Source of the DNA: Chrysemys picta bellii
Taxonomy: Eukaryota
DNA: 64,000 nt
NCBI RefSeq assembly: GCF_011386835.1
Contig: NC_088791.1
Span: 356,252,001 to 356,316,000 of the forward strand
Direction of reading: 5' to 3'
A model generated the notes under the pieces. That model was given only the letters and a program-made list of their open reading frames with translations, did not search any database and was not told the DNA's origin. Position numbers and translations under genes: made by a program. This document shows, one piece after another, positions 1-56,425 of the stretch. Each line of letters opens with the position of its first letter. Positions within the stretch are counted from its first letter, which is position 1.

Positions 1-373
1 CATCCTGATTGCCATGTTCTTTTTCTCCCTCTGAGCCACCTGGCACTGGGCACTGTCAGAAGACAGGCTACTGGGCTACATGGACCATTGGTATTTCCCA
101 GTCTGGCCATTCTGGTCTTCTTGTTTAGACACCAGATGTATCTGCCTCCTGCTGTATCCCACTATACCCCACCCCACTCCCAGAGCTGAGATACATCCCA
201 GGACTCCTGACGGGGTCTCTCTCTCCACAGACTTAGTAACAAATTGAGAATAAACATTAAAATTTTAACACTAACCAGTGCGTCTTAAGTGACTTGCCAT
301 AAGATGTGAGAACATATTGGTTTTAGAGATGACTGGGTCATGGCTGACAAGGGGAGGGGAAGACAGGATCAAG
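1..373. repeat. Segmental-duplication fragment (spacer X, 3' flank of OR-A genes)
   Basis: Same-strand match to ~34878-35247 and ~59672-60010 (catcctgattgccatgttctttttctccctctgagcc...gacagga[t/g]caag). Confidence 0.9.
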
Positions 374-649
374 GCAGGACAACTTTTTATTTCAGAAGGT
401 TGAAAAAGCTATTGGGGAGAAGCTGTTCTAGACTTGATTTTAACAAATAGGGAGGAACTCGCTGAGAATTTGAAAGTAGAAGGCAGCCTGGGTGAAAGTG
501 ATCATGAAATCATAGAGTTTGCAATTCTAAGGAAGGGTAGAAGGGAGAACAGCAAAATAGAGACAATGGATTTCCGGAAGGCAGATTTTGGTAAGCTCAG
601 AGAGCTGATAGGTAAGGTCCCATGGGAATCAAGACTGAGGGGAAAAACA
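374..649 (+). mobile_element. CR1 LINE subfamily a, 5'-truncated piece (end of ORF2 endonuclease)
   Basis: Translates to ...[31 protein letters not shown]...[19 protein letters not shown], an APE-endonuclease C-terminus with the SDH motif. Confidence 0.85.
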
Positions 650-2076
650 GTCTAACGTCAGTACCGGGCAAATTAGTCGAAACAATAGTAAAGAATAAAA
701 TTGTCAGACACATAGAAGAACATAAATTGTTCGGCAAAAGTCAACATGGGTTCTCTAAAGAGAAATCGTGTCTGACTAATCTATTAGAGTTCTTTGAAGG
801 GGTCAACAAACATGTGGACAAGGTGGATCCAGTGGACATAGTGTACTTAGATTTCCAAAAAGCCTTTGACAAGGTCCCTCACCAAAGGCTCTTACGTAAA
901 TTAAGTTGTCATGGGATAAAAGGGAAGGTCCTTTCATGGAATGAGAACTGGTTAAAAGACCGGGAACAAAGGATAGGAATAAATGGTAAATTCTCAGAAT
1001 GGAGAGGGGTAACTAGTCGTGTTCCCCAAGGGTCAGTCCTAGGACCAATTCTATTCAACTTATTCATAAATGATCTGGAGAAAGGGGTAAGCAGTGAGGT
1101 GGCAAAGTTTGCAGATGATACTAAACTGCTCAAGATAGTTAAGATGAAAGCAGACTGTGAGGAACTTCAAAAGGATCTCACAAAACTAAGTGATTGGGCA
1201 ACAAAATGGCAAATGAAATTTAATGTGGATAAATGTAAAGTAATACACATTGGGAAAAATAACCCCAACTATACATACAATATGATGGGGCCTAATTTAG
1301 CTACAACAAAACAGGAAAAAGATCTTGGAGTCATCATGGATAGTTCAACAAGATGTTAGGAATCATTAAAAAGGGGATAGAGAATAAGTCGGAGAATATA
1401 TTAGTGTCCTTATATAAATCAATGTTATGCCCACATCTTGAATACTGCACACAGATGTAGTCCCCTCATCTCAAAAAAGATATACTGGCACTAGAAAAGG
1501 TTCAGAGAAGAGCAACTAAAATGATGAGGGGTTTGGAGAGGGTCCCATATGAGGATAGATTAAAGAGGCTAGGACTTTTCAACTTGGAAAAGAGGAGACT
1601 ACGGGGGGATATGATAGAGGTATATAAAATTATGAGTGATGTGGAAAAAGTAGAGAAGGAAAAGTTATTTACTTACTCCCATAAGACAAGAACTAGGGGT
1701 CACCAAATGAAATTAATAGGCAGCAGGTTTAAAACAAATAAAAGGAAGTTCTTCTTCACACAGCGCAGTCAACTTGTGGAATTCCTTACCTGAGGAGGTT
1801 GTGAAGGCTAGGACTATAACAGCGTTTAAAGAGAACTGGATACATTCATGGAGGTGAAGTCCATTAATGGCTGTTAGACAGGATGGGTAAGGAATGGTGT
1901 CCCTATACTCTGTTTGTCTGAGGGTGGAGATGCATAGCAGGAGAGAGATCACATGATCATTACCTGTTAAGATTACTCCCTCTGGGGCACCTGGCATTGG
2001 CCACTGTCGGTGGACAGGATACTAGGCTAGATGGACCTTAGGTCTGACCCAGTACGGCCGTTCTTATGTTCTTATG
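650..2076 (+). mobile_element. CR1 LINE subfamily b, 3' part (RT and 3' UTR)
   Basis: ORF 622-1359 has [22 protein letters not shown] and FADD; it ends in a (TTCTTATG)2 tail at 2061-2076. Paralogous to 48112-49742 (-). Confidence 0.95.
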
Positions 2077-2230
2077 AAGTCAGGACACTTGGGTTCTGTC
2101 AGACAGTCTCTGTGTGACCTTGGACATCAGTTTACTGATCAGTAAAATGGGGATGGTTCACAGTGACTTGCCTTTGCTAGGTGTTTTGAATATCCATCAC
2201 TGAAAAGTGTTATACAGTATGATGATAGTT
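2077..2230 (+). mobile_element. Ancient MIR/CORE-SINE-like fragment
   Basis: ctgtgtgaccttggaca...cagtttactgatcagtaaaatggggat resembles the MIR core. Similar pieces occur at ~25150-25330, ~47960-48111 and ~51790-51925. Confidence 0.4.
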
Positions 2231-2439
2231 ACTGATGAGAAGTACTGATCTCTGATCCCTTAGCCACAGCCCCATGTATTTCCTGTAATTGCTTGTGTCT
2301 CCTCTTAGTCCACTTTCTCCAGATCTCTCTGTCTATGATCTACACATCTATCCTGAGAATTAGGAATAATCCCTCATTTTCCTTCTCATCAACTATACTT
2401 TTTAAATACATACACACAAACGTACAGAGCAGCCAATTC

Positions 2440-2530
2440 CTCTCTGACTCAGCACAGAGCCCATGAGTTTTCATCTCCCTTTGGGAAGGTTCCTTAATTA
2501 CTGTTTACTTCTAAGGCTGGATAATTAGCA
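2440..2530 (+). promoter_or_regulatory. Candidate OR promoter motif cluster (TGACTCA, imperfect O/E-like TCCC-N3-GGGA, TAATTA x2)
   Basis: Motifs at 2445-2451, 2476-2486, 2495-2500 and 2522-2527. Most are also present at 25572-25627 and 47676-47743 (-). Function is inferred only. Confidence 0.35.
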
Positions 2531-3370
2531 GAGAAGCGGAGAGTTGCTTGTCTACAGCCTGTTTACACTCAGATCCTCCCTTCTCCTCTAGAGGCCGAGC
2601 GAACCCCACTGGGATTTCACAGAGTTATATTATAAACTGTATATAATGTGTGTCGGCTCTCAGCGTGGGATGCTGCTGCATATGCTGGGTTCAGAGAGGT
2701 GTGGGCCACGGATACCTGAGGGGGATTCCTAAGGAGACCACTTCGATCTCAGAATTCACAGGTACCCATCTCTTGATGAGGAGTTCACATGATTGACAAA
2801 CCCTGTGCACATGGGTGTGGTTGAATAGAGAGTAAGTCTGTGGTCTCTTCCACTCTGCACATCCATGAAACATCCTGGGACCCTTGCCATAAGTGATGAG
2901 TTTGCTAAAGAATCACTGGACAATTTGTCACTGATTACTGTGCACCGCTGCGCATCCTGCCTGATGGACTGCAGCCCCAAGGAGATGCAGTTCAGTGGCA
3001 CAGTCAATCTTTCAGGATGAAAGATGTTAGTAGATATGCAATACAAGGCCAAATTCTGAGACCATGGCCCGTGCTTTGCTCAGGCCCAGTGAAGCAAAAC
3101 TCCCCATGGAGAAAGAACTGAGTACCGATGTCAGGAGTCAACTGTGTGTTAATGCACAGACACTGTCACCCCCTCCTCTTGCATTTCAGGACTCTGTCTG
3201 TTAATAAGGCAGGGGGACAGGGGCTTTTACCTGACTTTTATCTGCTGGAAAGATTAGAGGTGCTAGGGCTCCGAACGAGAACAATAATGAGCATTTTTCA
3301 ACATGGGTAACACATACTTTCTCCTAGCTTCATTCAAGAAGTTGGCTGAACTGTTATGCTTGAAACTTTC

Positions 3371-3396
3371 AAAAAAAAAAAAAAAAAAAAAAAAAA
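3371..3396 (+). repeat. Poly(A) run, 26 nt
   Basis: Directly visible. The paralogous run at 44669-44677 is only 9 T. Confidence 0.95.
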
Positions 3397-3914
3397 CAAT
3401 TCTGCTCAAAGGAGACACCCAGCTTGGGACATTTCAGGCCAAACAACTAAAATCTGGCAAACTTATAAGCAACTGGAAATGAGGTCGTCTAATGGAAGGT
3501 GTCAGACAGCCTTACCTACAGGTGATTCCACCAGCACCGCCTACAATGGCCAATCCATTTGTGAATCCCATTCTTCTATGCTCTTTGCGCCAATAATATT
3601 GGTAGCAAGGAGTTCTATAGGGCAAATATGAATTACAGTAGCAATTACCTTTTCTCGATGTTATATGTTCAGATGACTTTCAATTTAACTAAATGTTCCT
3701 GTGTTCATGTTATGAGACACATTAAATAGAAATGCCTGATCTACTTTCTTTATCAATAGATCCATAGGGTTTAAGGTCAGAAGGGACCATTTGATGATCC
3801 AGTCTGACCTCCCGTAAAACACAGGCCCATTAAATTTCACTCAATTTCCTCTGGATTGAGCCAAAAGACTTGTGTGTGACTAAGGTCGGGTCTACACTAG
3901 GATTTTACATCATA

Positions 3915-6300
3915 GATTGGTAGAGCCATAGAGTTATAAGGGAACGCAAAGGACAGCTAGTCTATCCCTCTGACATGATGTTGGATTTCTTTTGTCTTAA
4001 TCATCTAAGACTGATGGCTATTCACAGGTCTGTGAAAAACTTCCATAGTGGGAGCTTCCATGACTTCCCTGGGAGTCTGTTCAATTGGGCTCCTGTAGTT
4101 AAAGTTAGGAAGATTTTCCTGAAATTTAATGTATATCTTCTATGCTGCAATTTGAACCCACTGCCTCTTGTCCTGGCTTTCTGTGGTAAGACAGAATAAC
4201 TTTCCTCTACCTTTTTATGGCCGCTTTCAAGTGTTTGAAGACCACTATCATGTGCCCCATTAATCTCCTCTCTTCCAAATAAACATACTGGTTCCTTTGG
4301 CTTGCTCATAGAGCTTGCATTCCATCCCTTGTGTAACATTTGTTACTTGCCTATAGATCATTTCCAGCTTCTCTACATTCTTTTCATACATTGGTGAGCA
4401 AAATTGGACACATTACTCCAATTGAGACCTAACCCACACCGAGTAGAGGAATACTAGCACGTACCATGACTTGCATGTTATAATTCTGGTAATATAACAA
4501 AACATAGTATTTGCCTTTTTTGAAACATTTTTCCTAATGTCCAACCTAAACCTCCCTTGCTGCAATTTAAGTCCATTGCTTCTTGGCTTCTCTTCAGAGG
4601 TTAAGGAGAACACTGTTTTTCTCTCCTTGTAACAACCTTTTAGGTGTTTGAACAGTTATCATGTCCTCCTTCAGTGTTCTCTTATTCAGACTAAATAAAC
4701 CTAGATCTTTCAGTCTTCCCTCAGAGGTCGTGTTTTGAAGACTCCCAATCATCCTTTTCTGACGATCACTTATCACTTTATTATCTTCTAGATGTTTGCA
4801 AATTAATTCCTTAATAAATTGCTACATTTTCTTACCTGGTACAGAAGTTAAGCTGACTGGTCTGTTATTGCCTGGGTTTCCCTTATTCCTTTTTATAAAT
4901 AGGCACTATATGTGCTCTTTTCCAGTCTTCCGGAATCTCCAATGTGTCCCATGACTTTTCAAAGATAATAGCTAATGGCTCAGATATCTTCTCAGTCAGT
5001 TCCTTAGGAATATGCTAGGATGCATTTTCTCAGGCCATGGTGACTTCAAGACATCTAACTTTTCCAAGTAACTTTTAACTTCTTCTTTCCATATTTTAGC
5101 ATCTGAAACTACCCCATTTTCACTGGCATTCTCTATGTTAGGTGTCCAAACATCACCAACATTCTTGGTGAAAACTAAATGAACTATGGTTTATCATCCT
5201 CCTTGCTAAATATTTGGCCCTAATTTCGAGCTGGAATTTGCCTGGATTCAGCTTCCAGCCCTTACGTCTTGCTCAGCCTTTGTCTGGTAGATTACAGAGC
5301 CCATTATTACCCCTGATTTTCTCCCCATGAAACTGTCCGCTTGATCATCTTTTTGATAAGTTAAAGAGATATACACCTTCAAGTCTAACAATCCGGCTTT
5401 TTCTCTATCCTCCAAAAAAATTTCTGGCTCTTTTCTGCACCTTCTCTAAGTTTTCAACATGTTTTTTCAAATGTGGACCCCAGAACTGGATGCAGTTTAT
5501 TTCACCAATCGCATGTGAAGAGGTCAAATCCTTCCCCTGCCCCAACTAACCAACTCAATATTTTCTCCTACTAAATCAAATGACTCTGAGAAATCAAGGT
5601 ACGTTGCATCTGCACTGTTCCCTTGATCCTCCAAATGTGAATCTGTGATCAACCAATGTGTACTCTCATAAAAGGATGAAATCAGGTTTATTTGACAAGA
5701 TCTGTCTTGCCTGTTGGTGATTGGCATTACTTACATTTCTAGATTTTTCTTTAAACTCATCCCATACCAGGTTTTACATTTTTTCTTAACCTTGTCAATT
5801 CTTTTATAAAAGAAACCTTTCCCTTTATTTTTTAATACTTTACATTTAACACAGGAATTGACATAAATCTTGTCTAGGATTTCATTTGTTCTTAATATAC
5901 ATAATAACCTCCTTTTTGTAATCCATAGCCCTGACAAACTTGGAGTTTTCCCTGATGTCTTAATGTTCCTGATACATTTTTTTAACTTCCGATTTCTATT
6001 GTTGGCTCGCTATTTTCCAGTTTTCCTCTTTGTTACATATTGCTTCCCTCCCCCTAAATGCTGCCGTCACTTTACCACTAAACTGAGTTTGTACCAAAAG
6101 TTGTTCACTTTGTTGACTCTGGAATCATGAGTTTTCCAATATGTAATAAACTGTTATCAAAGAATTACCAATATTCATTCATATTTTTTGTCTAAATTTT
6201 CCCTCCCTATCAATGTTGCTGATAATTTTCCTGAGTTTTGGGGAATTAGTCGTCTTGGAGCACCTAGTGTCTATCGATAGTACTGGTTGGGAACTGTCCA
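3915..6300 (-). mobile_element. Mosaic of old degraded CR1 fragments
   Basis: Short ORF remnants such as [42 protein letters not shown] and ADATYLDFSESFD. Duplicated inverted at ~40830-44110 and ~62060-63523. Confidence 0.75.
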
Positions 6301-6924
6301 TCTGAATGTAAATCAGTTTCATTTTTAATTTTCCTCTCTTATATCATGTGGTCTCTTCTTTGTCTCTTGTGTGAACTAAAGAATCCCAGACATTTCTATC
6401 CTTAGTAGAGAGTGACCAAAACTGAGCACATATCCCGAACATACCGTATCTTAGAAATCTGAACATTGTTTTGTTTTGTCCACTGCGGCGAATGTGCAGG
6501 TGTTTCTCTTGAGGTGCTATCAATGGCGCCCAGGTCTTTTCCCTGAGGTGTGTTCTAATTGGGATGCTTCTTTCAGCACATGTCTTCGCAAAAGTTTGTT
6601 TTTTCCCCTCTCTAATTTTGAGCAACTGGATGAATGGGGAACTCCCTTCAATATAGACTCTCTATCCTAGCTTGCATTAAGGAGCTATGATGGATAACCA
6701 GTATCCACACTTGTGTTTCCTGCTGGTGCCTCTTAAGGTCCCCCCACCAAAAAGTGTAGAAAATATTAATTCAGGGAGCACAACAAAAATATGGAATTGG
6801 ATTTAGTAGGGTCATTGTTCATAGTTATTTTCTCAGAATAATGAAAATGTCATAAATCAGTGTGTGAAGAGTGATCAATCTGGTTCTCCCATGTGAACAG
6901 CCTCCACTACTGCATGCAGTGTCT

Positions 6925-6950
6925 CATATTAACGTTGTCTCTCCATTCAG
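6925..6950 (+). promoter_or_regulatory. Predicted 3' splice acceptor of the OR coding exon
   Basis: Branch-like TTAAC, then pyrimidine tract, then CAG|G at 6948-6951. Equivalent sites lie upstream of B1 (30314), A2 (40173) and A3 (61394). OR genes typically have non-coding 5' exons. Confidence 0.55.
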
Positions 6951-7055
6951 GCATTTCTACTGTGACCATCACCCAAGATCCTGGGAACACACAAAAACTC
7001 AGGGGAACAGAGGACATCCTTATGCCTCAGAGTTGGACACTTTCTCTCCTACGCT

Positions 7056-8003
7056 ATGTCAGATTCGAACACAACCAACTTCACCAACCCCTCCATGTTC
7101 ATCCTACTTGGCATTCCTGGCCTAGAGGCAGCCCGTCTCTGGATCTCCATCCCGTTCTGCATTATGTACGCCATAGCCGTGTTGGGGAACTTCACCATCC
7201 TGTTTATCGTGAAGAGGGAGCCAAGCCTCCATGGACCCATGTTCTATTTCCTCTGTATGCTGGCCATCACCGACCTGGTCATGTCCACATCCACCATACC
7301 CAAAATGCTGAGCATCTTTTGGTTCAATTCCAGGGAGATCAGTTTCAGTGCCTGCCTCACCCAGATGTATTTCGTTCTCTCCTTCTCTGGGATGGAGTCT
7401 GGAATCCTCGTGGCCATGGCTTTTGATCGCTACGTGGCCATCTGCAATCCTCTGAGGTATTCCACAATCCTGACAAACTCTGCTGTGGCCAAGATAGGCC
7501 TGGCTGTGGTGCTGCGCAGTGGCATACTTGCATTACCTTATCCCTTCCTGGCCATGCGGTGGCCATATTGCAGAACCAACATTATCCCCCACTTCTATTG
7601 TGGGCATATAGCTGTGGTGAAGCTGGCCTGTGGTGACATCCGCATCAGTAGTTACTATGGCCTGTTTGATCTTTTTTCTCAGATTGGAATGGACGTGTTT
7701 TTTATTTCCATGTCCTATACTCTGATCCTCCGGGCCATCTTCCGCCTCCCCACAAAGGATGCCCGGCTCAAAACTTTTGGGACCTGCATCTCTCATGTTT
7801 CTGCCATCTTAGCTTTGTATGTCCCAGATTTCTTGTCCTCCCTCATTCATAGGTTTGGCCACAATGTGCCACTGCACTTCCTTCTTCTCATTACCAGTCT
7901 GTACTACCTGGTGCCCCCTGTGCTACACCCCATCATTTATGGGGTGAGGACCAAACAGATCCGGGACAGGCTGCTCCAGCTCTTTACTCATAAATGGACC
8001 TAA
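7056..8003 (+). CDS. Olfactory receptor, class I OR52-like (A1), intact, 315 aa
   Basis: Motifs FILLGIPGLE, LHGPMFYFL, MAFDRYVAICNPLRY, KTFGTCISH and [12 protein letters not shown]; seven hydrophobic segments; no stops. Confidence 0.96.
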   Translation: MSDSNTTNFTNPSMFILLGIPGLEAARLWISIPFCIMYAIAVLGNFTILFIVKREPSLHGPMFYFLCMLAITDLVMSTSTIPKMLSIFWFNSREISFSACLTQMYFVLSFSGMESGILVAMAFDRYVAICNPLRYSTILTNSAVAKIGLAVVLRSGILALPYPFLAMRWPYCRTNIIPHFYCGHIAVVKLACGDIRISSYYGLFDLFSQIGMDVFFISMSYTLILRAIFRLPTKDARLKTFGTCISHVSAILALYVPDFLSSLIHRFGHNVPLHFLLLITSLYYLVPPVLHPIIYGVRTKQIRDRLLQLFTHKWT

Positions 8004-8306
8004 ATGTTTTCTCCTTGTGCTCTGGCTCTCAGATTGAGCTCTGTGCAGAGCTGGCTGGTCCATGGTGCTGGGGCCTCTTCCCTGAACCACTTACTGGACA
8101 GGCAGAGAGACATTAAACCCTTTTGTGCCCTTACTGAGCTGTGTCAATGTGATGAACTGGGGAGTCAGTCTATGTACACTACACTGGGTTGCCACCTTTC
8201 TAATTGCTGGTAGCTGGATCCCTGGAATTGCAATCTTGCCCCATCTCTTCTGTCAACCCTCGACCCTGCTGTGTGTCTTCGCCCCAAGGCCCTGCCCTTG
8301 TCACTT

Positions 8307-9503
8307 AGATTCATAGATTCTAGTATTGGAAGGGACCTCGAGAAGTCATCGAGTCCAGTTCCCTGCCCGCATACTGTCTAGACCATCCCTGATAGACATT
8401 TATCTAACCTACTCTTAAATATCTCCAGAGATGGAGATTCCACAACCTCCCTAGGCAATTTATTCCAGTGTTTAACCACCCTGACAGTTAGGAACTTTTT
8501 CCTAATGTCCAACCTAGACCTCCCTTGCTGCAGTTTAAACCCATTGCTTCTGGTTCTATCCTTAGAGGCTAAAGTGAACAAGTTTTCTCCCTCCTCCTTA
8601 TGACACCCTTTTAAATACCTGAAAACTGCTATCATGTTCCCTCTCAGTGTTCTCTTTTCCAAAATAAACAAACCCAATTCTTTCAGCCTTCCTTCATAGG
8701 TCATGTTCTCAAGATGTTTAATCATTCTTGTTGCTCTTCTCTGGACCCTTTCCAATTTCTCCACATCTTTTTTGAAATGTGGTGCCCAGAACTGGACACA
8801 ATACTCCAGCTGAGGCCTAACCAGAGCAGAGTAGAGTGGAAGAATGACTTCTCGTGTCTTGCTCACAACACACCTGTTAATAACACCCCAGAATCATGCT
8901 TGCTTTTTTTGCAACAGCATCACACTGTTGAGTCATATTTAGCTTGTTTTCCACTATAACCCCTAGATCCCTTTCTGCCATACTCCTTCCTAGACAGTCT
9001 CTTCCCATTCTGTATGTGTGAAACTGATTTTTTCTTCCTAAGTGGAGCACTTTGCATTTGTCTTTGTTAAACTTCATCCTGTTTAACTCAGACCATTTCT
9101 CCAATTTGTCCAGATCATTTTGAATTATGACCCTGTCCCCCAGAGCAGTTGCAATCACTCCCAGTTTGGGATCATCAGCAAACTTAATAAGCTACTTTCT
9201 ATGCCAATATCTAAGTCGTTGATGAAGATATTGAACAGATCCGGTCCCAAAACAGACCCCTGCGGTACCCCACTCGTTATGCCTTTCCAGCAGGATTGGG
9301 AACCATTAATAACAACTCTCTGAGTACGGTTATCCAGACAGTTATGCACCCACCTTATAGTAGCCCCATCTAAATTGTATTTGCCTAGTTTATCGATAAG
9401 AATATCATGCGAGACCGTATCAAATGCCTTACTAAAGTCTAGGTATACCACATCCACAGCTTCTCCCTTATCCACAAGGCTCGTTATCCTATCAAAGAAA
9501 GCT
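8307..9503 (-). mobile_element. CR1 LINE subfamily a, 3' part (RT and tail)
   Basis: ORFs 9155-9508, 8877-9158 and 8378-8866 ([33 protein letters not shown]); tail agattcatagattc at 8307. Confidence 0.92.
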
Positions 9504-11241
9504 TGCATCTTGCAGGGATTTCACTTTAGTCATTGTACCTTTTAATTTCTATTTAACTAACCCCCTCATTTTTGTATAGTTCCCCCTTTTTGAAATTAAA
9601 TGCCACAGTGTTGGGCTGTTGAGATGTTTTTCCCACCACAGGGATGTTGAATGCTATTGTATTATGGTCACTATTTCCAAGCGGTCCTGTTATGGTTACT
9701 TCTTGGACCAGCTCCTGCGCTCCACTCAGGATTAAATTGAGAATTGCATCTCCTCTTTTGGGTTCCTGTACCAGCTGCTCCAAGAAGCAGTCATTTAAAG
9801 TATCGAGAAATTTTTTCTCTGCATTTCGTCCTGAGGTGACATATTCCCAGTCAATATGGGGATAATTGAAATCCCCCACTATTCTTGAGTTCTTTATTTT
9901 GATAGCCTCTCTAATTTCCCTTAGCATGTCATCATCACTATCACTGTCCTGGTCAGGTGGTCTATAATAGATCCCTAATGTTATATTCTTATTAGAGCAT
10001 GAAATTACTATCCATAGAGATTCTATGGAACATGTGGATTCACTTAAGATTTTTACTTCATTTGATTCTACATTTTCTTTCACATATAGTGCCACTCCCC
10101 CCTCCCCTGCACGACCTGTTCTGTCCTTCCCATATATTTTGTATCCCAGAATGATTGTGTCCCATTGATTGTCCTCAGTCCACCAGGTTTCTGTGATGCC
10201 TATTATATCAATATCCTCCTTTAACGGGGGCACTCTAGTTCACCCATCTTATTATTTAAACTTCTAGCATTTGTGTACAAGCACGTTAAAAACTTGTCAC
10301 TGTTTATTTATCTGCCCTTTTCTGATGTGTCAGATTCTTTATGTGACTGTTTCTCGTCTGATCTGACCCTTACATTATCCTCTTCCATCCTCTGCTCCTG
10401 ACTATAACCTAGAGAATCTCTATCAATAGACTCTCCTCTAAGAGAAGTATCTGTCCGATCCACATGCTCCTCTGCAGCAGTCGGCTTTCCCCCATCTCCT
10501 AGTTTAAAAACTGGTCTATATTCTTTTTAATGTTTAGTGCCAGCAGTCTGGTTCCACTTTGGTTTAGGTGGAGCCCATCTCTCCTCTATAGGGTCCCCCC
10601 ATCCCAAAAGTTTCCCCAGTTCCTAATGAATCTAAACCCCTCCTCTCTACACCATCGTCTCATCCACGCATTGAGACTCTGAAGCTCTGCCTGCCTACCT
10701 GGCCCTGTGCGTGGAACTGGGAGCATTTCGGAGAATGCCACCATAGAGGTCCTGGATTTCAGTCTCTTCCCTAGCAGCCTAAATTTGGCCTCCAGGACAA
10801 CTCTCCTACCCTTCCCTGTGTCATTGGTACCTACCTGTACCACAACCACCGGCTCCTCCCCAGCACTACACATAAGTCTGTCTAGATTCCTCGAGAGATC
10901 CGCAACCTTCGCACCAGACAGGCAAGTCACCATACGATTCTATTGGTCATCACAAACCCAGCTATTTGTGTTTCTAATGATTGAATCTCCCATTACTAAC
11001 ACCTCCCTTTTCCTAGTAACTGGAGTATCCTCCCCCGGCGAGGTAACCTCAGTGTGAGAGGATACCCCAACACCATCTGCAAGGAGGGTCCCAACTATGG
11101 GAAGGTTTCCCTCTGCTCCCGTTGACTGCTCTGCTTCCCTGGGCCTTTCATCCTCCTCAACAGCACAGGGGCTGTCTGACCGGAGGTGGGATAATTCTAC
11201 AGTGTCCCGGAAACCCTCATCAACATACCTCTCTTCCTCCC
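9504..11241 (-). mobile_element. CR1 LINE subfamily b, 5' part (ORF1 esterase and ORF2 endonuclease)
   Basis: ORF 9553-10233 (GITETWW, GIYYRPP, GDFNYPHIDW, NSDH) is near-identical to 50509-51309. ORF 10586-10933 has the SGNH-like VVVQVGTND motif of CR1 ORF1. Confidence 0.92.
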
Positions 11242-11659
11242 TGTGATGGAGCAGGGAGCAGGGTGTATTTGACCTGGGAATGGAGCCTGGGAGTTACTTT
11301 GAGCTACCTGAGCTGTAACCTGAGCCAGGAGGGGGGTGGGAGAAGTGACATCTTCTGCCCAGGAGACTGAACAAAGGAGAGGAGAAGCAGAGGGGAGGGG
11401 GGAGAGAGCTGCTGGAGGGTTTTGGGAGTTCTTCAGTTTTGGGCTGGTAGGTGCAACACAGGGAACCCCCAGCTGGGGTCTAAGCTCCCTGCGCTCCCCA
11501 AGAGGACTTGATTGAGGGGTCCTGGATGTATCTACAAGCTCTGCTGTAGACTGTGTTCCTGTTATCCAATAAACCTTCCGCTTTACTGGCTGGCTGAGAG
11601 TCACGGTGAATCGCAGAAAGCCGGGGGTACAGGCCCTGAGTCCTCCACACTCCGCAACA
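11242..11659 (+). mobile_element. 5' LTR of outer Gypsy (Gmr1-like) element
   Basis: TG...CA ends and AATAAA at ~11569; followed by tggtgttagcggtgggat (11662-11679), similar to a tRNA-Leu PBS. No partner LTR found, so the boundaries are inferred. Confidence 0.7.
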
Positions 11660-12005
11660 ACTGGTGTTAGCGGTGGGATCTACTGCACCCCGTGGATGGT
11701 GCTTCCTGCAGTAAGTGACTGGGGAGCAGTAAAACGAAGGGGGATCGACGGGGACCAGCTGGGCAGAAGAATCAGAGAGAGACAGTTTCAGGGGGCGATT
11801 AACCCCTGGGAGTGTGTGACCAGTGAGAAGGACTTTTGCAGGAACAGGGTCCCCTGGGGGATCACAGCGAGCGGGCCCGGGGTGGAGGAGTCTGCAGCTC
11901 GACTCTGGCAGAGAGGTGGGGACCTGAAGAAGGGCTGGCACACTAGGGATCCCCCTGGAACATTGGAAAGTGGAGAGCACAGGCCGGCGAGTGGCCAGCA
12001 GGAGG

Positions 12006-13798
12006 ATGGATGCTAAACGCCGCAAGAGCGACCTGGTGGAGCTGTGCAGACAGAGGGGGCTGCGCATTGGGAGGTCCACCAAAGAACAGCTCATTGCCCA
12101 GCTGGAGGAGAGGGATCGCTTAGATGAACCGAGCCCTGTCCCAGAGAGAAGCCGCCCGGCGGATGCAGCATGGGCCCTGGGCCTGACATGGCTGGGAGGG
12201 GTCAGACTGCTGCCAAGGACATCCCAAGACCCTGCCTACCTATACCTAAGGGAGGGGTTGGGGGAATCCCAGCAAATACCGAGGGCACCCTGACCCCGGC
12301 AGCCAGCAGGGGATTGTCCCGGCAGAGCTCCCCGTCCCTGGAACGGATGCGGCTGGAATGTGAATGGGAGATGAGACAGGAAGAGCTCGAGTTAAGGCAG
12401 CAAGAACTGAAGCAGGAGCAGGAAGAGAAGGAAAAACAACGTCAGCATGAGCGGGAAGAATAGGAAAAACAACGTCAGCATGAGGCGAACCAGCGTCAGC
12501 ATAAGCTGGAACTGGCCAGGCTGAGGAGCAGTGAGGCCCCAGCTGCGGTGAGCAAGGGGGGACCCAAGACTGCAAAGAGCTTTGATAAGTGCTTCCTGGC
12601 CCAGCGTAAGGAGGGGGAGGACATGGATACCTTCCTGAAGGCCTTTGAGGATACCTGCGAGCTGCCCCAGGTTGACCCTGCAGAGAGGCTCCAGTTTCTC
12701 ATGCCCTCACTGGACCCCACGGCCAGGGAGGTGTACAGCCGACTGAAAGGGCCGGAGACAGGGGACTACGAACTGTTCAAAAAGGCCCTGCTCCGCGAGT
12801 TTGGGCTGACCCCTGAGATGTACCGGAAAATGTTCCAGAGTCAGCATAAAACCCATGAGGTCACATACCTACAACTAGCCAACCGGGCGCAGGGGTATGC
12901 CCGCAAGTGGACGGCTGGGGCCCAGACTAAAGAAGACCTGCTTGACCTAGTCGTACTGGAGCATGTGTATGAGCAGTGCCCATCTGACCTGAGGCGATGG
13001 TTGATGGACCAAAAGCCAGGGAACCCGCAGCATGCAGGCCAGTTGGCCGACCAGTTTGTGAACAGTCGGGCAGAGGATAACCGGGAGGAGTCCCAAAGGA
13101 ACAGGCCCACCACAACGCAGAGAGAGATTCATCATGGGACCTCCCAGCGAGGAAATATGGAGAACCCCCACCAAAGGGGAACATCCAGCGTCAGGTCCAT
13201 CCGACCCGCTCGAGGGGACCCACGGGACATGGGCTGCTATCACTGTGGCCAGAAAGACCACATACGGGCCCAGTGCCCCAGGCTCAGGGACAGACTGAGC
13301 AGACCGAACCCACAGACGGTTGACTGGGTAGAGGCCCAGCCGGGCGAGAGGCAGCATTCCCAGGGAAGGGGGGCTGGCAGAGCACCACCTGCTAAGGAGG
13401 GAGCAGAGCTCCAGGACAGCTCCTCTGGGGGGCTGGATGCTCCAGACTCAGGGTTTTTGGTTTATACAGTGGGCGTGGGGTTGTCCCTCTGCAGAGAGTG
13501 CCTTGTTCCCCTGGAGGTGGATGGGAGAAAGGTCAATGGATACTGGGATTCGGGCGCAGAGGTAACGTTGGCCCGGCCCGAGCTGGTGGCTCCAGATCGG
13601 GTGGTGCCCAACACCTACCTGACCCTGACGGGGGTGGGTGGGACCCCATTCAAGGTGCCTGTGGCGAGGGTACACCTGAAGTGGGGGCCCAAGGAGGGCC
13701 CCAAGGATGTGGGGATGCACCACCATTCACCCACTGAGGTGTTGATGGGGGGGACCTGGAGGACTGGCCAAGCGACCCTCCGGGTGCCCTGGTCATGA
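12006..13798 (+). pseudogene. Outer Gypsy gag-protease, disrupted
   Basis: Coiled coil, SCAN-like Gag (FGLTPEMYRKMF...VVLEHVY), CCHC knuckle CYHCGQKDHIRAQC and protease WDSGAEVT. Frameshift near 12170-12290 and a stop at 12461. Confidence 0.85.
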
Positions 13799-16109: not shown

Positions 16110-19100
16110 ATGACTACAAAAGAAGAAAAAGCCAAAGAGGAGGCCCACAAGAGAGCTATGGAGCTGAAAGAAAAAGAGATAGAGCTGAGAGAAAGAGAAG
16201 AGAAAGCCAAAGAGGAGGCCCAAAAGAGAGAGATGGAGCTGAAAGAAAAAGAGATGGAGGAGAGAGAAAAAGAAAGGAAGCATGAACTCGAAGTAGCAAA
16301 GGCTAAGCCGGATACAACAGCCAATCCTAACAACCCCCCTCCAGGTACCACCTCCCATCCCAGAAAATTCCCCACCTACAAGGCAGGCGATGATACTGAG
16401 GCCTTCTTTGAAAATTTTGAAAGGGCCTGCCTTGGATACAGCATCGCTGCAGACCAGTACATTGTAGAGCTGAGGCCGCAGCTCAGTGGACCCTTAGCAG
16501 AGGTGGCGGCTGAAATGCCTAAGGAACACATGAACAGTTATGAACTTTTTAAAAACAAGGTCAGAATCAGAATGGGGCTAACACCTGAGTATGCCCGTCG
16601 GCAGTTCAGAGCCCTAAAGTGGAAACCCGATGTGACATTTACCCGACATGCCTACCACGTTGGGAAAAATTGGGATGCCTGGATATCAGGAGCAAATGTT
16701 AAATCTACAGAAGAGTTGCCCTTCCTAATGCAAATGGAGCAGTTTTTAGAGGGTGTGCCTGAGGAAATAGAAAGGTACATCCTAGATAGGAAGCCCAAAA
16801 CTGTAACTGAGGCGGGGGAGATTGGAGCCAAATGGGTGGAGGTGGCAGAAAAGAAAAAAACTAGTAGCAGTTGGAGTGAATATCAGAAGGGGCAAGCCGA
16901 AACAAAACCTTACCACCGGGGACAACCCAAGGCCCCACCCACATCCCAAGGGAAACCCCAGACGCCTTCTCACCCCACCACACCAGTCTCCACCAACCAA
17001 CATCGCTCCGGTGATACCTTAGCAGGGCGATGTTTTAAATGTAATGAGCTGGGACACATAAAGGCTCACTGCCCCAAGAACACCAACCGATTACAGTTCA
17101 TTACACCACAATCACACCAAACATCCCCAGACCCAGATGCCTCTCTCATACCCTCGGAGAGAAGGGAAACCTTGAGAGTGGGTGGAAAGAAGGTTACCGC
17201 TTGGAGGGACACTGGGGCACAAGTGTCAACTATACACCAATCCCTAGTGGACCCCAAACTCATCAACCTGGAGGCTCCAGTGACAATTCAACCCTTCATG
17301 TCACAGTCTGTAACCTTGCCTACAGCCACATTGCATGTCCAGTACAAGGGGTGGTCAGGAATGTGGACTTTTGCAGTCTATGACAATTATCCCATTCCCA
17401 TGCTGCTGGGGGAAGATTTGGCCAACCATGTGAAGCTAGTCAAGAGGGTGGGAATAGTCACCCGCAGCCAGGCTAAGCAAGCTTTCACCCCCATCCCTGT
17501 TCCTGAGCCGTCCACCAGGGCCCCGTCTGTGTTACCAGAGACCCAAACAACGGTGGTGGAACCGGATCCCATGCCAACGACTGCAACAGCCGTAGTGGAT
17601 CCAATCCCAGAGACCCAGCCAAAGCCAGTCCCAGAACCGGAACTGGCAACGCAACCAGCACCAGAACCACTGCCAACACTGAGTCCAGCGCTTGCAAACC
17701 CGTCTACAACTTCAACGCCAGAGGGCACCAGTGAGCCTGACCTGGCGGAAGTAGCAGATAACCCTACCCAAGAGGTTCAGCCAGAGCCTGAGATACCACA
17801 TAGTGCACCAGCGGACAGCGGATCACAGTCAATGGAAACAGCCCCCGCACCTGCATCGCTTCCAGAGGGACCAAGCCCCAGTCCACAGTCCAAGGAGGAA
17901 CTGATGTCTCCAGCATCAAGGGAACAGTTCCAGGCCGAGCAGGAAGCAGATGACAGCCTTCAGAAAGCTTGGGAGGCGGCGTGGAGCACCCCACCGCCTC
18001 TCAGCTCTTCTAACCGATCCCCATTTGTTGTAGAACAAGGACTTTTATACAAGGAGACTCTTTCTGGTGGGCACCAGGAAGACTGGCATCCTTAAAGACA
18101 GTTGGTAGTTCCCACTAAGTATCGGGTAAAGCTCTTGAGCTTAGCCCATGATCATCCCAGTGGCCATTCTGGGGTGAACAGAACCAAAGACAGGTTGGGG
18201 AAGTCCTTCCAATGGGAGGGAATGGGCAAGGACGTTGCTAATTATGTCCGGTCTTGTGAGGTGTGCCAACGAGTGGGAAAGCCCCAAGACCAGGTTAAAG
18301 CCCCTCTCCAGCCACTACCCATAATTGAGGTCCCATTTCAGCGCGTAGCTGTGGATATTCTGGGTCCTTTCCCAAAGAAGACACCCAGAGGAAAGCAGTA
18401 CGTACTGACTTTCATGGATTTTGCTACCTGATGGCCGGAAGCAGTACCCTTAAGCAACACCAGGGCTAAAAGTGTGTGCCAAGCATTAACAGACATTTTT
18501 GCCAGGGTAGGTTGGCCCTCTGACATCCTTACAGATTCAGTAACTAATTTCCTGGCAGTGACCATGAAAAACCTGTGGGAAGCTCATGGGGTGAATCACT
18601 TGGTTGCCATCCCTTACCACCATGAAACCAATGGCCTGGTGGAGAGGTTTAATGCAACTTTGGGGGCCATGATACGTAAATTTTTAAATGAACACTCCAA
18701 TGATTGGGATTTAGTGTTGCAGCAGTTGCTTTTTGCCTACAGGGCTGTACCACATCCCAGGTTAGGGTTTTCACCTTTGAACTTGTGTATGGCCGCGAGG
18801 TTAAGGGGCCATTACAGTTGGTGAAGCAGCAATGGGAGGGGTTTACGCCTTCTCCAGGAACTAACATTCTAAACTTTGTAAGCAACCTACAAAGCACCCT
18901 CCGACACTCTTTAGCCCTTGCTAAAGAAAACCTAAAGGATGCTCAGGAAGAGCAAAAGGCCTGGTATGATAAACATTCCAGAGAACGGTCCTTCAAAGTA
19001 GGAGACCAAATCATGGTCTTAAAGGCGCTCCAGGCCCATAAAATGGAAGTGTCGTGGGAAGGACCATTCACGGTCCAGGAGCTCCTAGGAGCTGTTAACT

Positions 19101-20632: not shown

Positions 20633-20793
20633 CAATTGTTCTTGGAATGAAACATATTGTTAGTTTTGATATAATCAGTAGTATGTCTAAAGGTACATGT
20701 GTCTTATTAACTCTGTTTTCTCCTAGAATTCCAGGAAGAAATCACAGGCAGTGTGGAACCGAACGTCCAACACTATCTGTGATTTGGGGGGCG

Positions 20794-21690
20794 TGTCATA
20801 ACTATAAAGGGAAGGGTAACAGCCCTCCTGTGTACAGTACTATAAAATCTCTCCTGGCCAGAGACTCCAACATCCGTTTCCCTGTAAAGGGTTAAGAAGC
20901 TCAGGTAACCTGGCTGGAATCTGACCTAAAGGACCAATAAGGGGACAAGATACTTTCAAATCTTGGGCGGGGCGGGGGTAGGCTTTTGTTTGTGTTTTTG
21001 TTTGGGAGTTCGTTCGCTCTCGGGACTGAGAGGGACCAGACATCAATCCAGGTTCTCCACATCTTTCTAAACAAGTCTCTCCTATTTCAAACTTGTAAGT
21101 AAATAGCCAGGCAAGGCGTGTTAGTTTTCCTTTGTTTTCTCAACTTGTAAATGTACCTTTGACTAGAGTGTTTATCTTTGTTTGCTGTACTTTGAACCTA
21201 AGACTAGAGAGGGGTCCTCTGAGCTCTTTAAGTCTGATTACCCTGTAAGGTTAATTTCCATCCTGATTTTACAGAGGTGATTTTTACCTTTTTCTTTAAT
21301 TAAAAGCCTTCTTTTTAAGAACCTGAATGATTTTTCCTTGTTTTAGATCCAAGGGGGTTGGATCTGTATTCACCAGGAGTTGGTGGGAGAAAGGAGGGGG
21401 GATGGTTAATTTCTCCTTGTTTTAGATCCCAGGGGGGTTGGAACTGTATTTACCAGGAGTTGGTGGGAGGAAGAAGGGTGGATGGTTAATTTCCCCTTGT
21501 ATTAAGATCCAAGGGGTTTGGATTTGTATTCACCAGGGAATTGGTGAAGGTTTCTCAAGGCTTCCCAGGGATGGGAATTCTTGGGGTGGTGGCAGCGGAC
21601 CAGAGCTAAGCTGGTAGTTACGCTTAGAAGTTTTCATGCAGGCCCCCACATTTGTACCCTAAAGTTTAAAGTGGGGATACAGCCTTGACA
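20794..21690 (+). repeat. 3' LTR of inner element
   Basis: TGTCATAAC...TGACA; paired with 14878-15770. Confidence 0.95.
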
Positions 21691-22799: not shown

Positions 22800-23200
22800 A
22801 CCATGGATTTATAGAGAGGCAATATGATATTTTCTATCTTATTATCTGTCCCTTTCCTAATGATTCCCAACATTCCGTTTGCTTGTTTTGTCTGTCACTG
22901 CACACTGAGCAGATGTTTTCAGAGAACTTTCCACAATGACTCCAAAATCTCTTTCTTGAGTGGAAACAGTTAATTTAGACCCCATCATTTTGTATATGTA
23001 GTCGGAATTATATTCTGCCATGTGCATTACTTTCAATTTATCAGCATTCAATTTCATATGCAATTGTGTTGTCCAGTCACCCAGTTCTGTGCAATCCCTT
23101 TGTAACTCATTGCAGTCTCCTTTGTATTAATTATCTTGAATAGTTTTGTATCATCTGCAAGTTTTGCCACCATTAGTACTGTTTACCCCTTTTACTAAAT
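22800..23200 (-). mobile_element. Degraded CR1 RT fragment
   Basis: ORF 22857-23063 (KLNADKLKVMH...ERDFGVIVESSLKTSAQC). Confidence 0.8.
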
Positions 23201-24320
23201 CAAGGTCCTATCATGGACTGGTAACTGGTTAAATGATAGGAAGCAAAGGGTCAGAATAAATGGTCAGTTTTCAGAATGGAGAGAGGTAAATAGTGGTCTC
23301 CCCCAGGAGTCTGTACTCGGACCTGTCATATTCACAAATGATCTGGAAAAAGGTGTAAGGGTGAGGTGGCAAAATTTGCAGATAATAAACTACTGAAGTT
23401 AGTTAAGTCCCAGGCAGACTGCAACGAGCTACAAAAAGATCTTTCAAAACTGGGTCACTGGGCAACAAAATGGCAAATCCCAACTATACATATAAAACGA
23501 TATGGTCTAAATAAGCTGTTACCACATAAGAAAGAGATCTTGGAGTCATTGTGGATAGTTCTCTGAAAACATCCACTCATTCGGCAGCGGCACTCAAAAA
23601 AGCGAACAGAATGTTGGGAATCATTAAGAAAGGGATAGATAATAAGACAGAAAATATCATATTATCTCTCTATAAATCCATGTTACACCCTCATCTTGAA
23701 TACCGCATGCAGATGTGGTTGCCCTATCTCAAAAAAGATATTTTGGAATTGGAAAAGCTTCAGAAAAGGTCAAGAAAAAAATATTAGGGCATGCAATGGG
23801 TGCTGTATGAGGAGACATTAATAAGACTTGGACTTTTCAGCTTGAAAAAGAGATGACTAAGGGTGGATAGGATAGTGGTCTATAAAATCATGACTGGTGT
23901 GGAGAAAGTGAATAAAGAACTGTTATTTACTCCTTTTTCATACCACAAGAACTAGGGGTCACCAAATGAAATTAATAGGCAGCATGTTTAAACAAACAAA
24001 AGAAAATATTTCTTCACACAATGCACAGTCAACCTGTGGAACTCTTTGCCAGAGGATGTTGTGAAGGCCAAGACAAAGAGTTCAAAAAAGAACTAGATTA
24101 ATCTATGGACAATAGGTCTATCAATGGCTATTAGCCAGGGTGAGCACGGATGGTGTCCCTAACCTCTGTTTGCCAGAAGCTAGGAATGAGTGACAAGGAA
24201 TGGGTCACGTGATGATTACCTGTTCTGTTCATTGGCTCTGGTGTACCTGCCATTGGCCACTGTCAGAAGACAGGATACTGGGCTGGATAGACCTTTGGTC
24301 TGACCCAGTGTGGCCATTTA
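23200..24320 (+). mobile_element. Degraded CR1, RT to 3' end
   Basis: AKFAD.KLLK, HLEYRMQMW and a 3' UTR similar to 1800-2076. Confidence 0.88.
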
Positions 24321-24789
24321 TATATTTTTATGTTCTTTATATATACTGTGAACATCAATGGTCCAAGGACTGATGCCTGGGGGACATGTTCTTTAACTCT
24401 CTCCGTGTGGAAAATTGCCCCTTTATTCGTACACTTTGTTTCCTATCTTTTAATGGAAGTGCCTGTCAATGCTTCCAGGATCATCTAATGATCCTTAATT
24501 TAATTTAATGACTTCAGGTAGGAAAATTGGGGGGGGGGCCTAGAACCCCCGCCAGCTCCCCTAAATGGCACCCCTGCCCAGCTGGGTGCTTTCCGCTCCC
24601 AGGCTGGGATGGGAGCTGCTGCAGCCTGAAAAGGAGCCTCCCCGCAGGTAGGAGGCAGCCCCGGCTGACCAGGGGCTGGCTTGGGTTAATGACCCGATGC
24701 CTCCCCCTGTCCTACAGTAACTGGACACTGCCAGGTTCCATTTCCGACTCGACTTTCTAGTTTAAAACTAGGTACCTGGCAACCCTAAA

Positions 24790-25150
24790 TGACACCCAGA
24801 CACAGAAGCCAAAAACCAGATTGTATGGGCAAAATCGTGATAATGTGTGCCTTTATTTCTTAGATAGCCAACTCTGTAGAGAGCCAAGTTCAACAAGGAC
24901 AAGTACAGCTGGGTGCGTCCCTGTCTGTCAAAAACTGCATACGTGCAAGACCTGGAGAGGATTGCAGCTTGTCACAGCCTCACAGTGTCAGTGGGGCTTC
25001 ATACTGGTATGCCAGAGGGCTTGGCGGTACCCCAATTCCAGGTTGCACCGTGCAGAAGTCATCACACCCACCCAATGAACAGGCCCTGGGAGATTGTGAG
25101 TCCATTTCCCATTTCTAGTGCACACAGTTACTGACGGAGAGACCGTTGTT
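24790..25150 (-). mobile_element. LTR fragment of the family also seen at 51300-53114
   Basis: Reverse complement matches cacactgtgaggctgtgacaagctgcaatcctctc at ~51466 and ~52097. Confidence 0.55.
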
Positions 25151-26719
25151 ATAGCCGGGAAATCAGGACTCCTGGGTTCTGTCTGTTATTCTCTGTGTGA
25201 CTTTGGCCAACTCATATCTCCCTGCACCTCAGTTTACCAATGGGTATAATGGGGATATGTATATGTTCATAGTGACTTTCCTTTGCTAGGTGTTTTGAAC
25301 ATCCTTCAATGAAAGTTTCTACGCTGAATGATGATAATTACTGATGAGAATTACTGATCTCTGATCCCTTAGCCACAGCCCCATGTGCCAACAGAAAGTG
25401 TTCATGTCTCCCATCAGTCATCTTTCTCTAGCTCTGTCTGTCTACTACTGTTTAGCCTGTGCATTTACACAGTATCAGACCCTATGGGACCTAGGCATTA
25501 TCCCTAGTTTTTTTAGTAATCAACAATAATTTTTAAATATACTCAATTACAAAGAACAGGTAATTCCTCTCTGACTCAGTGAAGAGCCCAAGGGGTCTCA
25601 ACTCCCTCTGGGAAGGTCCCTTAATTATTGTTTACTGCTAACGCTGGATAACAAACACAGAAGCATGGACATAGAGAGAGAGTCATTGGGTAGAATGTCT
25701 CTAGTCTCCAGCCTGTTTACATCCAGATGCCACTTCTCCCCAGAGGCTGAGCGAAACCCACTGGGATTGCATACAGCTATATTTAAATGGTGCACACCCC
25801 TGTTTTGGCTATTAGCGTGGGATTCTGCTGCAGATGCTGGGGTCAGAGAGGTGCAGGACACAGCCACTGGAGGGTGATTCCCAGGGAAGACACTTCCATC
25901 ACAGAAATCACAGGTACCCATCTCTTTCTGTTCGACATGCGCAGTGCAACGTGCGCATGATGGGACAGGGAATAGGTCTGTAGTCATTTCCACTCTGCCC
26001 AGGCATTAAACATCCCACAGCCCTTTCCACAGCGGATGAGTTTGCTCCAGTATCAGGGGCCAAAATGTTTCTAGGGTTCCTCACTAGAATAAATATAAAA
26101 TTTTTCAACATGGGCAAGACATCAGTTCTCCTGCTGCATTCGAGAAGTCGGATGAACCGTTATGCCTTAAACTTTCAAAATGCAATTCTGCTTGATGCAG
26201 ACAACCAACATGGTAAATTTCAATCCATACAGTTAATATTTGGCAAATGCATAAGCATCTTAAATTGCGGTCTTCTCCTTGAAGTTGTCAGACAGCCTTA
26301 ACTAACTGTGATGCCACCAGCACCACTTACAATGGCCAATCCATTTGTGAATCCCATTCAGCTAAGCTCTTTGCTCTACTAAGAGCTGTGGTAAGGAGTT
26401 CCACAGGCCAAATATGGGTTATATAAACAATTTTCTTTTTTGAGTGTTATATGTTCAGACTATTAATGTAATTGAATGTTCCCTTCTCGTGTTTTATGAG
26501 ATAGAGCAAATATAAATGCCTGATCTACTTTCGTTATCGATAGATTCATAATGTTCAAGGTCAGAAGGGACCATTAGATCATACAGTCTGACCTGCATAA
26601 TGCTGGCCACTAAATTTCACAGTTACGCTGGTATTGAGCTCCATAACTTGTGTTTGACGAGGATCTGGTCTACATTAGGATTTTATATCCTGGAATAATC
26701 GATACACACTAGCATTGAG

Positions 26720-36545: not shown

Positions 36546-36559
36546 TCTTTAAACAATGA

Positions 36560-56140: not shown

Positions 56141-56425
56141 CATAAAATATGGAATTCACATTAGTTGGGTCATGTGTTCATAATTCATATATCTGAATAA
56201 TGATAATGTCATTTTTCAGTGTGTGAAGAGCGACCAATCTGCTTCACCCATAAGAACAGCCTCCAGTGGTGCATGTAATGTCTCATATTAACATTCTCTC
56301 CATCCAAGCAATTGTACTACGACCATCACCCTCAAGCCTGGGCACATACAGGAAGCCAGTGGAACATACGGTACATGCAGGAGACACCGTTCAGCCTCAG
56401 TGTTGGACACCTTCTCCCCTACTCC

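Follow-up and report, generated by a model that had tools for sequence, protein, structure and literature searches.

How did one olfactory receptor (OR) gene come to lie in reverse between two chimeric retrotransposons? The question is raised by a 64-kb stretch of the Chrysemys picta bellii genome (referred to as the window), which is part of an array of class I (OR52-like) OR genes. Comparison of the window with itself by BLAST (self-BLAST) resolves a repeating unit consisting of a B-type OR, a spacer (X), an A-type OR on the minus strand and a retrotransposon of the CR1 family (CR1-b), also on the minus strand. The units of the array are 90-98% identical to one another. Unit 1 begins at the window edge, with its B gene (B1) just upstream of the window, unit 2 spans ~28.9-51.3 kb and unit 3 starts at ~54.4 kb. 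In unit 1, a block (650-8306) comprising the 3' part of CR1-b, an upstream region and the A-type gene, OR-A1, has the opposite orientation to that in the paralogous units 2 and 3. The inversion is real, and unit 1 is the derived state. It is probably the product of homologous recombination between two inverted insertions of another CR1 subfamily, CR1-a, and a later deletion in Chrysemys would have given the locus its present appearance.

The inverted block of unit 1

The left flank of the rearrangement is spacer X (1-373, plus strand), which extends upstream of the window toward B1 and matches 34876-35247 (95% identity) and 59671-60020 (91%) in the self-BLAST. Positions 649-8306 match the reverse complement of 35245-49742 at 90-95% identity, with gaps arising only from inserts that are specific to unit 2, and beyond the block 9504-10329 matches 50483-51304 in the same orientation (92.6%). 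The inverted block measures 7.7 kb, and 7,657 bp of host DNA separate the two pieces of CR1-a found in unit 1. Spacer X ends in caag at 373, and positions 8301-8306, at the far end of the block, read aagtga on the opposite strand, which places AAG at both ends. These two AAG copies, at 371-373 on the plus strand and at 8304-8306 on the minus strand (where the plus strand reads CTT), form the target-site duplication of a first CR1-a insertion, called aR. The corresponding site is empty in unit 2 (35241-35251, plus strand) and in unit 3 (~60020-60030), where caag-tgac reads straight through, as it does in the orthologous loci of Emys and Terrapene.

A first-pass annotation, made from the sequence alone, had described this rearrangement, and every coordinate that it gave for unit 1 holds under self-BLAST, reading of the individual bases, translation and Pfam searches. 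The AAG overlap that it took for a target-site duplication is indeed one: a 5'-truncated CR1-a was inserted at the boundary between X and the A block (X|A') with a 3-bp AAG duplication, and units 2 and 3 are contiguous there. Its proposals that both CR1s are a/b chimeras, joined at 649/650 and 9503/9504, and that the OR gene was reversed together with its upstream region are confirmed, and the gene is intact. It had also treated unit 1 as the inverted, derived copy and pointed to sister species for the un-inverted allele, which was found in Emys and Terrapene.

OR-A1 with its upstream and downstream regions occupies 2077-8306 (plus strand). This segment was inverted along with the 3' part of CR1-b, is colinear with the reverse complement of units 2 (from 35245) and 3, and has the same orientation as the orthologous locus of Malaclemys. 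The coding sequence (7056-8003, plus strand) is intact and specifies a class I (OR52-like) receptor of 315 amino acids (Pfam 7tm_4, E = 4e-106). Its orthologs, each 315 amino acids long, are 96% (Emys), 95% (Malaclemys) and 95% (Terrapene) identical to it. About 5 kb of non-CR1 sequence upstream of OR-A1 moved together with the gene. Since OR-A1 is intact at 315 amino acids in all four species and the 5 kb upstream flipped along with it, nothing points to a functional effect and, judged by sequence, the inversion looks functionally neutral. An exact-protein look-up for OR-A1 matched solely the record of the window itself, and an older Chrysemys annotation lists a 310-amino-acid version of OR-A1.

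CR1 pieces and their junctions

The first CR1 piece of unit 1 (374-649, plus strand; a5) is the 5' remnant of a 5'-truncated CR1-a, and its translation yields the C-terminus of the endonuclease, with the SDH motif and ~48 amino acids. In tblastx comparisons it shares 46-48% amino acid identity with the CR1-b endonuclease. No counterpart of a5 exists in the Emys, Terrapene and Malaclemys loci that were fetched, and no other CR1-a copy covering 374-649 is present in the window or in those loci; the Emys copy (1.8 kb) and a Malaclemys copy (0.56 kb) fall short of this region. The remnant is joined at 648-650, with a 2-bp AG microhomology, to the 3' part of CR1-b (650-2076, plus strand; b3), which runs from the start of the reverse transcriptase (RT) domain through the C-terminus of open reading frame (ORF) 2 and the 3' untranslated region (UTR) to an 8-bp repeat tail ending at 2076. 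The b3 piece has a Pfam RVT_1 match on the ORF 622-1359, matches the reverse complement of 49742-46889 and is inverted relative to units 2 and 3. At the point of the a5/b3 junction, both Malaclemys and Emys read through with CR1-b middle sequence.

At the other end of the block lies the 3'-terminal 1197 bp of CR1-a (8307-9503, minus strand; a3), which starts in the middle of the RT domain and extends from an RT motif to the ORF2 stop at 8378, the 3' UTR and a tail at 8307, with just two frame breaks. It meets the 5' part of CR1-b (9504-11241, minus strand; b5) at 9503-9504 in a blunt junction (0-bp microhomology) that is identical in Malaclemys; the CR1-a side of this junction is called a2 and the CR1-b side b1. 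The b5 piece, whose 5' end near 11241 is approximate, retains the ancestral orientation. It contains the esterase-like region of ORF1, seen as an ORF1-like translation, and the ORF2 endonuclease (Pfam Exo_endo_phos on the ORF 9553-10233), and 9504-11071 matches 2985-1416 of the Emys locus. The junctions 649/650 and 9503/9504 are placed with an uncertainty of 0-2 bp. All four pieces fit a long interspersed element (LINE) of the CR1 type, with an ORF2 bearing RVT_1 and Exo_endo_phos domains, an 8-bp repeat tail and 5' truncation. The tail repeat is ATGAATCT in CR1-a and TTCTTATG in CR1-b. This evidence supports the view that both junction elements of present-day Chrysemys are a/b chimeras.

A reference for what unit 1 lacks is the CR1-b middle piece of unit 2 (49743-50482, minus strand), the ORF2 linker between the endonuclease and RT domains, which reads with its flanks as contiguous CR1 ORF2 and is missing from unit 1. 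Compared with unit 2, unit 1 is missing 741 bp of CR1-b, and ~890 nt of CR1-a are missing when measured in CR1-b coordinates. In the same coordinates, a5 ends ~14 nt before b1 and a3 begins ~136 nt past the start of b3 (b2), and the two CR1-a pieces do not overlap. Because a5 ends upstream of the start of a3, the two can belong to one element. They are at a similar distance from CR1-b, and their flanks are exactly contiguous and share AAG. The identity between CR1-a and CR1-b is only ~60% at the DNA level.

Orthologous loci and the age of the inversion

A word search with OR-A1 yielded three proteins with 95-96% identity, from Emys orbicularis, Malaclemys terrapin and Terrapene carolina, and paralogs with 88-89% identity; the loci of the three were fetched (L002, L003 and L004, respectively). 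In a maximum likelihood tree of a 2.2-kb A region, Chrysemys unit 1 groups with Malaclemys and Emys with Terrapene, and these four are placed apart from units 2 and 3 (supports of 92-100). By this grouping the loci are orthologs of unit 1, and the tree agrees with the split of the two emydid subfamilies. In Emys and Terrapene, reverse-complemented X comes immediately after the A block, with a 3-bp overlap and no CR1-a between them, and the CR1-b of Emys is continuous over its 5', middle and 3' parts. Both species have the un-inverted layout and lack CR1-a at either of its two sites; this empty-site state is also seen in units 2 and 3. The Malaclemys locus (L003 3589-15446) is colinear with 649-12500 of the window at 96.5% identity, and the junctions at 8306/8307 and 9503/9504 are base-for-base identical in Chrysemys and Malaclemys. 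Since Malaclemys shares the colinear block and the right-hand junctions, the inversion is not an assembly artefact; since Emys and Terrapene are un-inverted, it dates to the stem shared by Chrysemys and Malaclemys.

Trachemys yielded no OR-A1 ortholog above 87% identity and no B-type ortholog above 81%. No ortholog of the B-type OR was found at >=85% identity in Malaclemys or Trachemys, and no anchor gene for the left flank was found there. About 340 bp of the CR1-b middle piece (49771-50113 in unit 2) are missing from the unit-1 orthologs of both Emys and Malaclemys; this loss is an older deletion in the unit-1 lineage.

A second CR1-a copy in Malaclemys

Malaclemys keeps ~360 bp of the CR1-b middle piece adjoining the inverted block and contiguous with b3. 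Because this piece outlasted the inversion in Malaclemys, the 649/650 junction of Chrysemys cannot be an original junction of the inversion. To the left of the CR1-b middle piece, Malaclemys has a second CR1-a 3' end of 562 bp (L003 2655-3216, plus strand), in the opposite orientation to the right-hand copy. Its tail joins CR1-b middle sequence that runs into b3, and the join lies 40 bp 3' of b1. The 40 bp beside b1 and both of its flanks are contiguous in Emys. Given this spacing and the contiguity in Emys, the two CR1-b junctions act as the two sides of one insertion site. The four junctions thus pair into two CR1-a insertion sites, one at X|A' with the AAG duplication and one in CR1-b with a 40-bp target loss, and 9503/9504 is read as the 5' junction of a second, 5'-truncated CR1-a insertion into CR1-b.

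The two Malaclemys copies (L003 2655-3216, plus strand, and 11252-12449, minus strand) are 93% identical over ~560 bp and have their tails facing inward. Their target flanks are swapped: the left element has AAG on its 5' side and b1+40 on its 3' side, and the right element has b1 on its 5' side and AAG on its 3' side. A 13-bp deletion, a tail of two units and several substitutions mark the right copy in both species; neither the left copy nor a CR1-a copy in Emys has them. By these differences the left and right elements are separate copies and not duplicates of each other. Farther left, the beginning of the Malaclemys locus (L003 1-2654) contains a reversed X-like piece and resembles spacer-type sequence of Chrysemys (~22900-26233 in the window, and 2716-5804 of the fetched upstream sequence, L005) at only 78-91%, the level of paralogs.

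CR1-a at other sites

The a3 piece (8307-9503) shares 97.4% identity with its Malaclemys ortholog in the corresponding position and 95.2% with an independent copy in Emys. The Emys copy (L002 14679-16453) is 1.8 kb long and has an almost uninterrupted ORF2 frame; the corresponding site in the window (54174/54175) is empty. As a source of a3 it was considered and rejected, being a separate insertion whose site is unoccupied in Chrysemys. The 3' flank of the Emys copy starts AAG-T, an AAG-type target like that at 373, and the tail-side flanks of the three CR1-a insertions begin AAGT, AAGT and AAAT. CR1-a copies differ by 3.6-4.7%, which is below the divergence of orthologous Chrysemys and Emys DNA (4.6-5.7%). 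To judge from the Emys insertion, the flanks and these divergences, the CR1-a subfamily was active at the time of the inversion.

Origin of the inversion

The history that is favored here, with moderate confidence, is that two inverted CR1-a insertions were followed by homologous recombination between them, which flipped the block, and that a deletion occurred later in Chrysemys. On the stem leading to Chrysemys and Malaclemys, once it had separated from Emys and Terrapene, two young CR1-a copies would have inserted ~8 kb apart in opposite orientation. One copy, aR (~2.4 kb), would have entered the X|A' boundary with a 3-bp AAG duplication. The other, aL (~1.2 kb), 5'-truncated at the point that is now 9503, would have entered the older CR1-b with removal of 40 bp of the target. 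Homologous recombination within the common 3' 1.2 kb would then have turned around OR-A1 with its upstream region as well as the middle and 3' parts of CR1-b. Such an exchange would swap the flanks, giving a left element with the 5' flank of aR (X-AAG) and the 3' flank of aL (CR1-b middle), and a right element with the 3' flank of aR (AAG-A') and the 5' flank of aL (CR1-b 5' part). In Chrysemys, ~2.4 kb would later have been deleted at a 2-bp AG microhomology, creating the 649/650 junction; with this deletion went the middle of CR1-a, the 3' part of the left CR1-a and the middle piece of CR1-b. In Malaclemys a different rearrangement would have removed X and most of the left CR1-a. We infer both the separate insertion of the two CR1-a copies and the homologous nature of the exchange.

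Several observations weigh against this history. Among the genomes compared, none has both CR1-a insertions un-inverted, and the parental elements and the crossover point are unseen. The stem branch is short, at 0.015 substitutions per site, and has to accommodate two insertions and an exchange. A full left element must be pieced together from what survives, a5 in Chrysemys and the final 562 bp in Malaclemys; a5 and a3 are presumed to be of one subfamily, and the Chrysemys join at 649/650 is known from one assembly. The leftmost Malaclemys sequence (L003 1-2654) has no match at the level of orthologs in the window or in the 13.6 kb to the left of X in Chrysemys. Finally, only ~14 nt of CR1 coordinates separate b1 from the end of a5 (a1), which has to be treated as coincidence. 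Homology-guided breakage was considered for this proximity, which was judged coincidental, the two junctions belonging to different events.

The first-pass annotation had envisaged a single event, in which one CR1-a inserted at X|A' and was then broken, together with the inverted CR1-b, and rejoined by non-homologous or microhomology-mediated repair. In that scenario the event itself cost CR1-a ~0.9 kb and CR1-b 0.74 kb, and 649/650 and 9503/9504 are original junctions. Both Chrysemys junctions do link non-homologous CR1 positions with 0-2 bp of microhomology, and ~60% DNA identity is too low for homologous exchange between CR1-a and CR1-b. However, the blunt 9503/9504 junction and the AG at 649/650 also fit the 5' junction of a LINE and a later deletion, Malaclemys, which shares the event, retains ~360 bp of the CR1-b middle contiguous with b3, and a second, inverted CR1-a 3' end, whose tail lies 40 bp from b1, is left unaccounted for. 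A single CR1-a/CR1-b break is consequently very improbable. The annotation had put the loss at roughly 0.9-1 kb from each CR1; these sizes are close to the 741 bp of CR1-b and ~890 nt of CR1-a measured here, but the CR1-b middle was not lost in the inversion itself, as Malaclemys keeps it. The annotation also judged nonallelic homologous recombination (NAHR) the less likely mechanism, whereas NAHR is favored here, between two CR1-a copies and not between CR1-a and CR1-b. A different non-homologous route would be an end-joining inversion from two breaks, one at a2 in CR1-a and the other at b1/b1+40 in CR1-b with the loss of 40 bp, followed by a deletion at the left junction in Chrysemys. In Malaclemys, a separate, later CR1-a insertion would have landed exactly on the left junction, with all sequence upstream of it deleted. 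In its favor, the right-hand join is blunt and links non-homologous positions, no more than 40 bp of CR1-b is left unexplained and CR1-a was active, which makes further insertions plausible. Nevertheless, the tail of the new insertion would have to fall within a base or two of the old junction, Malaclemys has no trace of the CR1-a middle between the tail and CR1-b, and the end of the sequence to the left of the Malaclemys copy is not CR1-a-like. This sequence of events is regarded as unlikely.

Retrotransposition might instead have produced the inversion in one step, an explanation that also seems doubtful. Both 3' ends of a nicked or broken 8-kb segment would have primed reverse transcription of CR1-a RNA from its tail, and ligation of the two cDNAs to the opposite outer ends would have flipped the segment. 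The position of the tails accords with such a process, since both CR1-a tails face the inverted block, where target-primed cDNAs would attach; AA(G/A)T opens the tail-side flank of each, a pattern shared with the independent insertion in Emys, and the CR1-a copies are of similar age. If the process did take place, retrotransposition directly made a balanced germline inversion. It would require priming at two points 8 kb apart, on opposite strands and at the same time, as well as a crossed resolution, and two ordinary insertions followed by recombination yield identical junctions. The copies also differ in the number of tail repeats and by a 13-bp indel, although these differences could have originated later. 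To our knowledge, germline inversion coupled to retrotransposition of CR1 has not been described, which counts against the one-step process. An error of assembly must be considered in any tandemly duplicated OR cluster, and units that are 90-98% identical invite misjoins. The independent Malaclemys assembly, however, has the same inverted block and the same right-hand junctions, and the junction sequences give a coherent history of insertion and deletion. Independent support is missing only for the Chrysemys-specific join at 649/650, and an artefact is extremely unlikely.

Comparison with known inversions

The turtle locus is a fresh example of a known, ordinary mechanism, the repeat-mediated inversion. 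Retrotransposon recombination-mediated inversion (RRMI) between inverted pairs of L1 or Alu elements has been described in human and chimpanzee (Lee et al. 2008, PMC2603318), and swapped target-site flanks are the published diagnostic of this process (PMC2603318). As in RRMI, retroelements of the same family in inverted orientation flank a flipped block on the kilobase scale, the breakpoint elements lack matching target-site flanks and the flanks match across the inversion (PMC2603318). Deletion of part of the sequence also accompanies some of the published cases (PMC2603318). The present case differs from RRMI in that the elements are turtle CR1 LINEs and not L1 or Alu, one partner had entered an older CR1, neither element occurs in the outgroup, which leaves the pre-recombination pair unobserved, and one arm has since been mostly deleted in each descendant lineage (PMC2603318 for the human and chimpanzee cases). 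Of the inverted CR1-a pair, Chrysemys retains only the remnants at 374-649 and 8307-9503, and a fuller pair is found in Malaclemys.

Inversions mediated by the Galileo transposon in Drosophila arise by ectopic recombination (PMC2775673). They likewise have inverted copies of one transposon family at the breakpoints and exchanged target-site duplications (PMC2775673). Unlike CR1, Galileo is a DNA transposon with long terminal inverted repeats, and its inversions are polymorphic and of chromosomal scale (PMC2775673). In the Drosophila melanogaster group, inversions that originate from staggered breaks carry inverted duplications at both ends (PMC1885836). The turtle inversion resembles these in having inverted repeats of the same sequence at both ends; however, the repeats of staggered-break inversions are copied in the event (PMC1885836), whereas the CR1-a ends differ by an indel, in tail length and by substitutions. 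Duplication by staggered breaks was rejected, as the CR1-a ends are not copies of each other and one nick would need to coincide exactly with the CR1 tail. Twin priming of L1 produces two adjacent pieces with no host DNA between them, the inverted piece being primed internally. The CR1-a pieces, which may belong to one LINE, likewise lie in opposite orientation. Twin priming was also rejected, since the pieces are 7,657 bp of host DNA apart and each reads in the sense direction relative to the flank next to it. A class of 5'-inverted LINE insertions is mentioned in PMC2912911.

Other features of the array

The OR genes B2 (30432-31379) and B1 (upstream of the window) are intact, and the B-type OR of unit 3 (56312-57262) is a pseudogene that has lost its reading frame in the final third. 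The X region of unit 1 (1-373 together with upstream positions 12991-13700 of L005) is 97-98% identical to that of unit 2 (34233-35247), and the remaining sequence of the unit is 90-93% identical. This excess of identity between the two units has the look of recent gene conversion, in a tract whose right edge is the boundary of X and CR1-a.

Two inserts are specific to unit 2. A 3.5-kb insert (35494-39038) that is not present in units 1 and 3 contains an ORF (38280-38897) encoding a hAT C-terminal dimerisation domain (Pfam) and is probably a hAT transposon. A 5'-truncated element of 2.1 kb, CR1-c (44745-46888), has an open frame of 677 amino acids that includes the RT; with ~67% amino acid identity it is the nearest relative of CR1-a within the window. 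A stretch of 0.9-1.0 kb (42344-43319) is found in unit 2 and, up to the end of the window (63524-64000), in unit 3, and is missing from unit 1 and from the Emys and Malaclemys orthologs. Within the RT region of the unit 2 CR1-b lies a 186-bp antisense fragment of a CR1 3' end (49240-49425) that unit 1 does not have. The right boundary of the segmental duplication (10329/10330 and 51304/51305) is inside CR1-b near the border of ORF1 and ORF2, and the CR1-b 5' part beyond it is kept by unit 1 and Emys and not by unit 2. The spacer between units 1 and 2, in which sequence is locally repeated (14870-15770 matches 20785-21690), contains two long ORFs with SCAN domains (12548-13798 and 16110-18095), one of which also has a CCHC zinc knuckle. 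These ORFs are probably derived from the gag of a retroelement.

Significance

The inversion in unit 1 is a dated, base-resolved case of CR1 LINEs reshaping an OR cluster in a reptile. The case offers an outgroup in which both insertion sites are empty, together with two descendants that have eroded different parts of one recombination arm. Read from a single genome, a homologous, repeat-mediated inversion can be made to resemble non-homologous repair by a later deletion, and this calls for caution when mechanisms are inferred from breakpoints.

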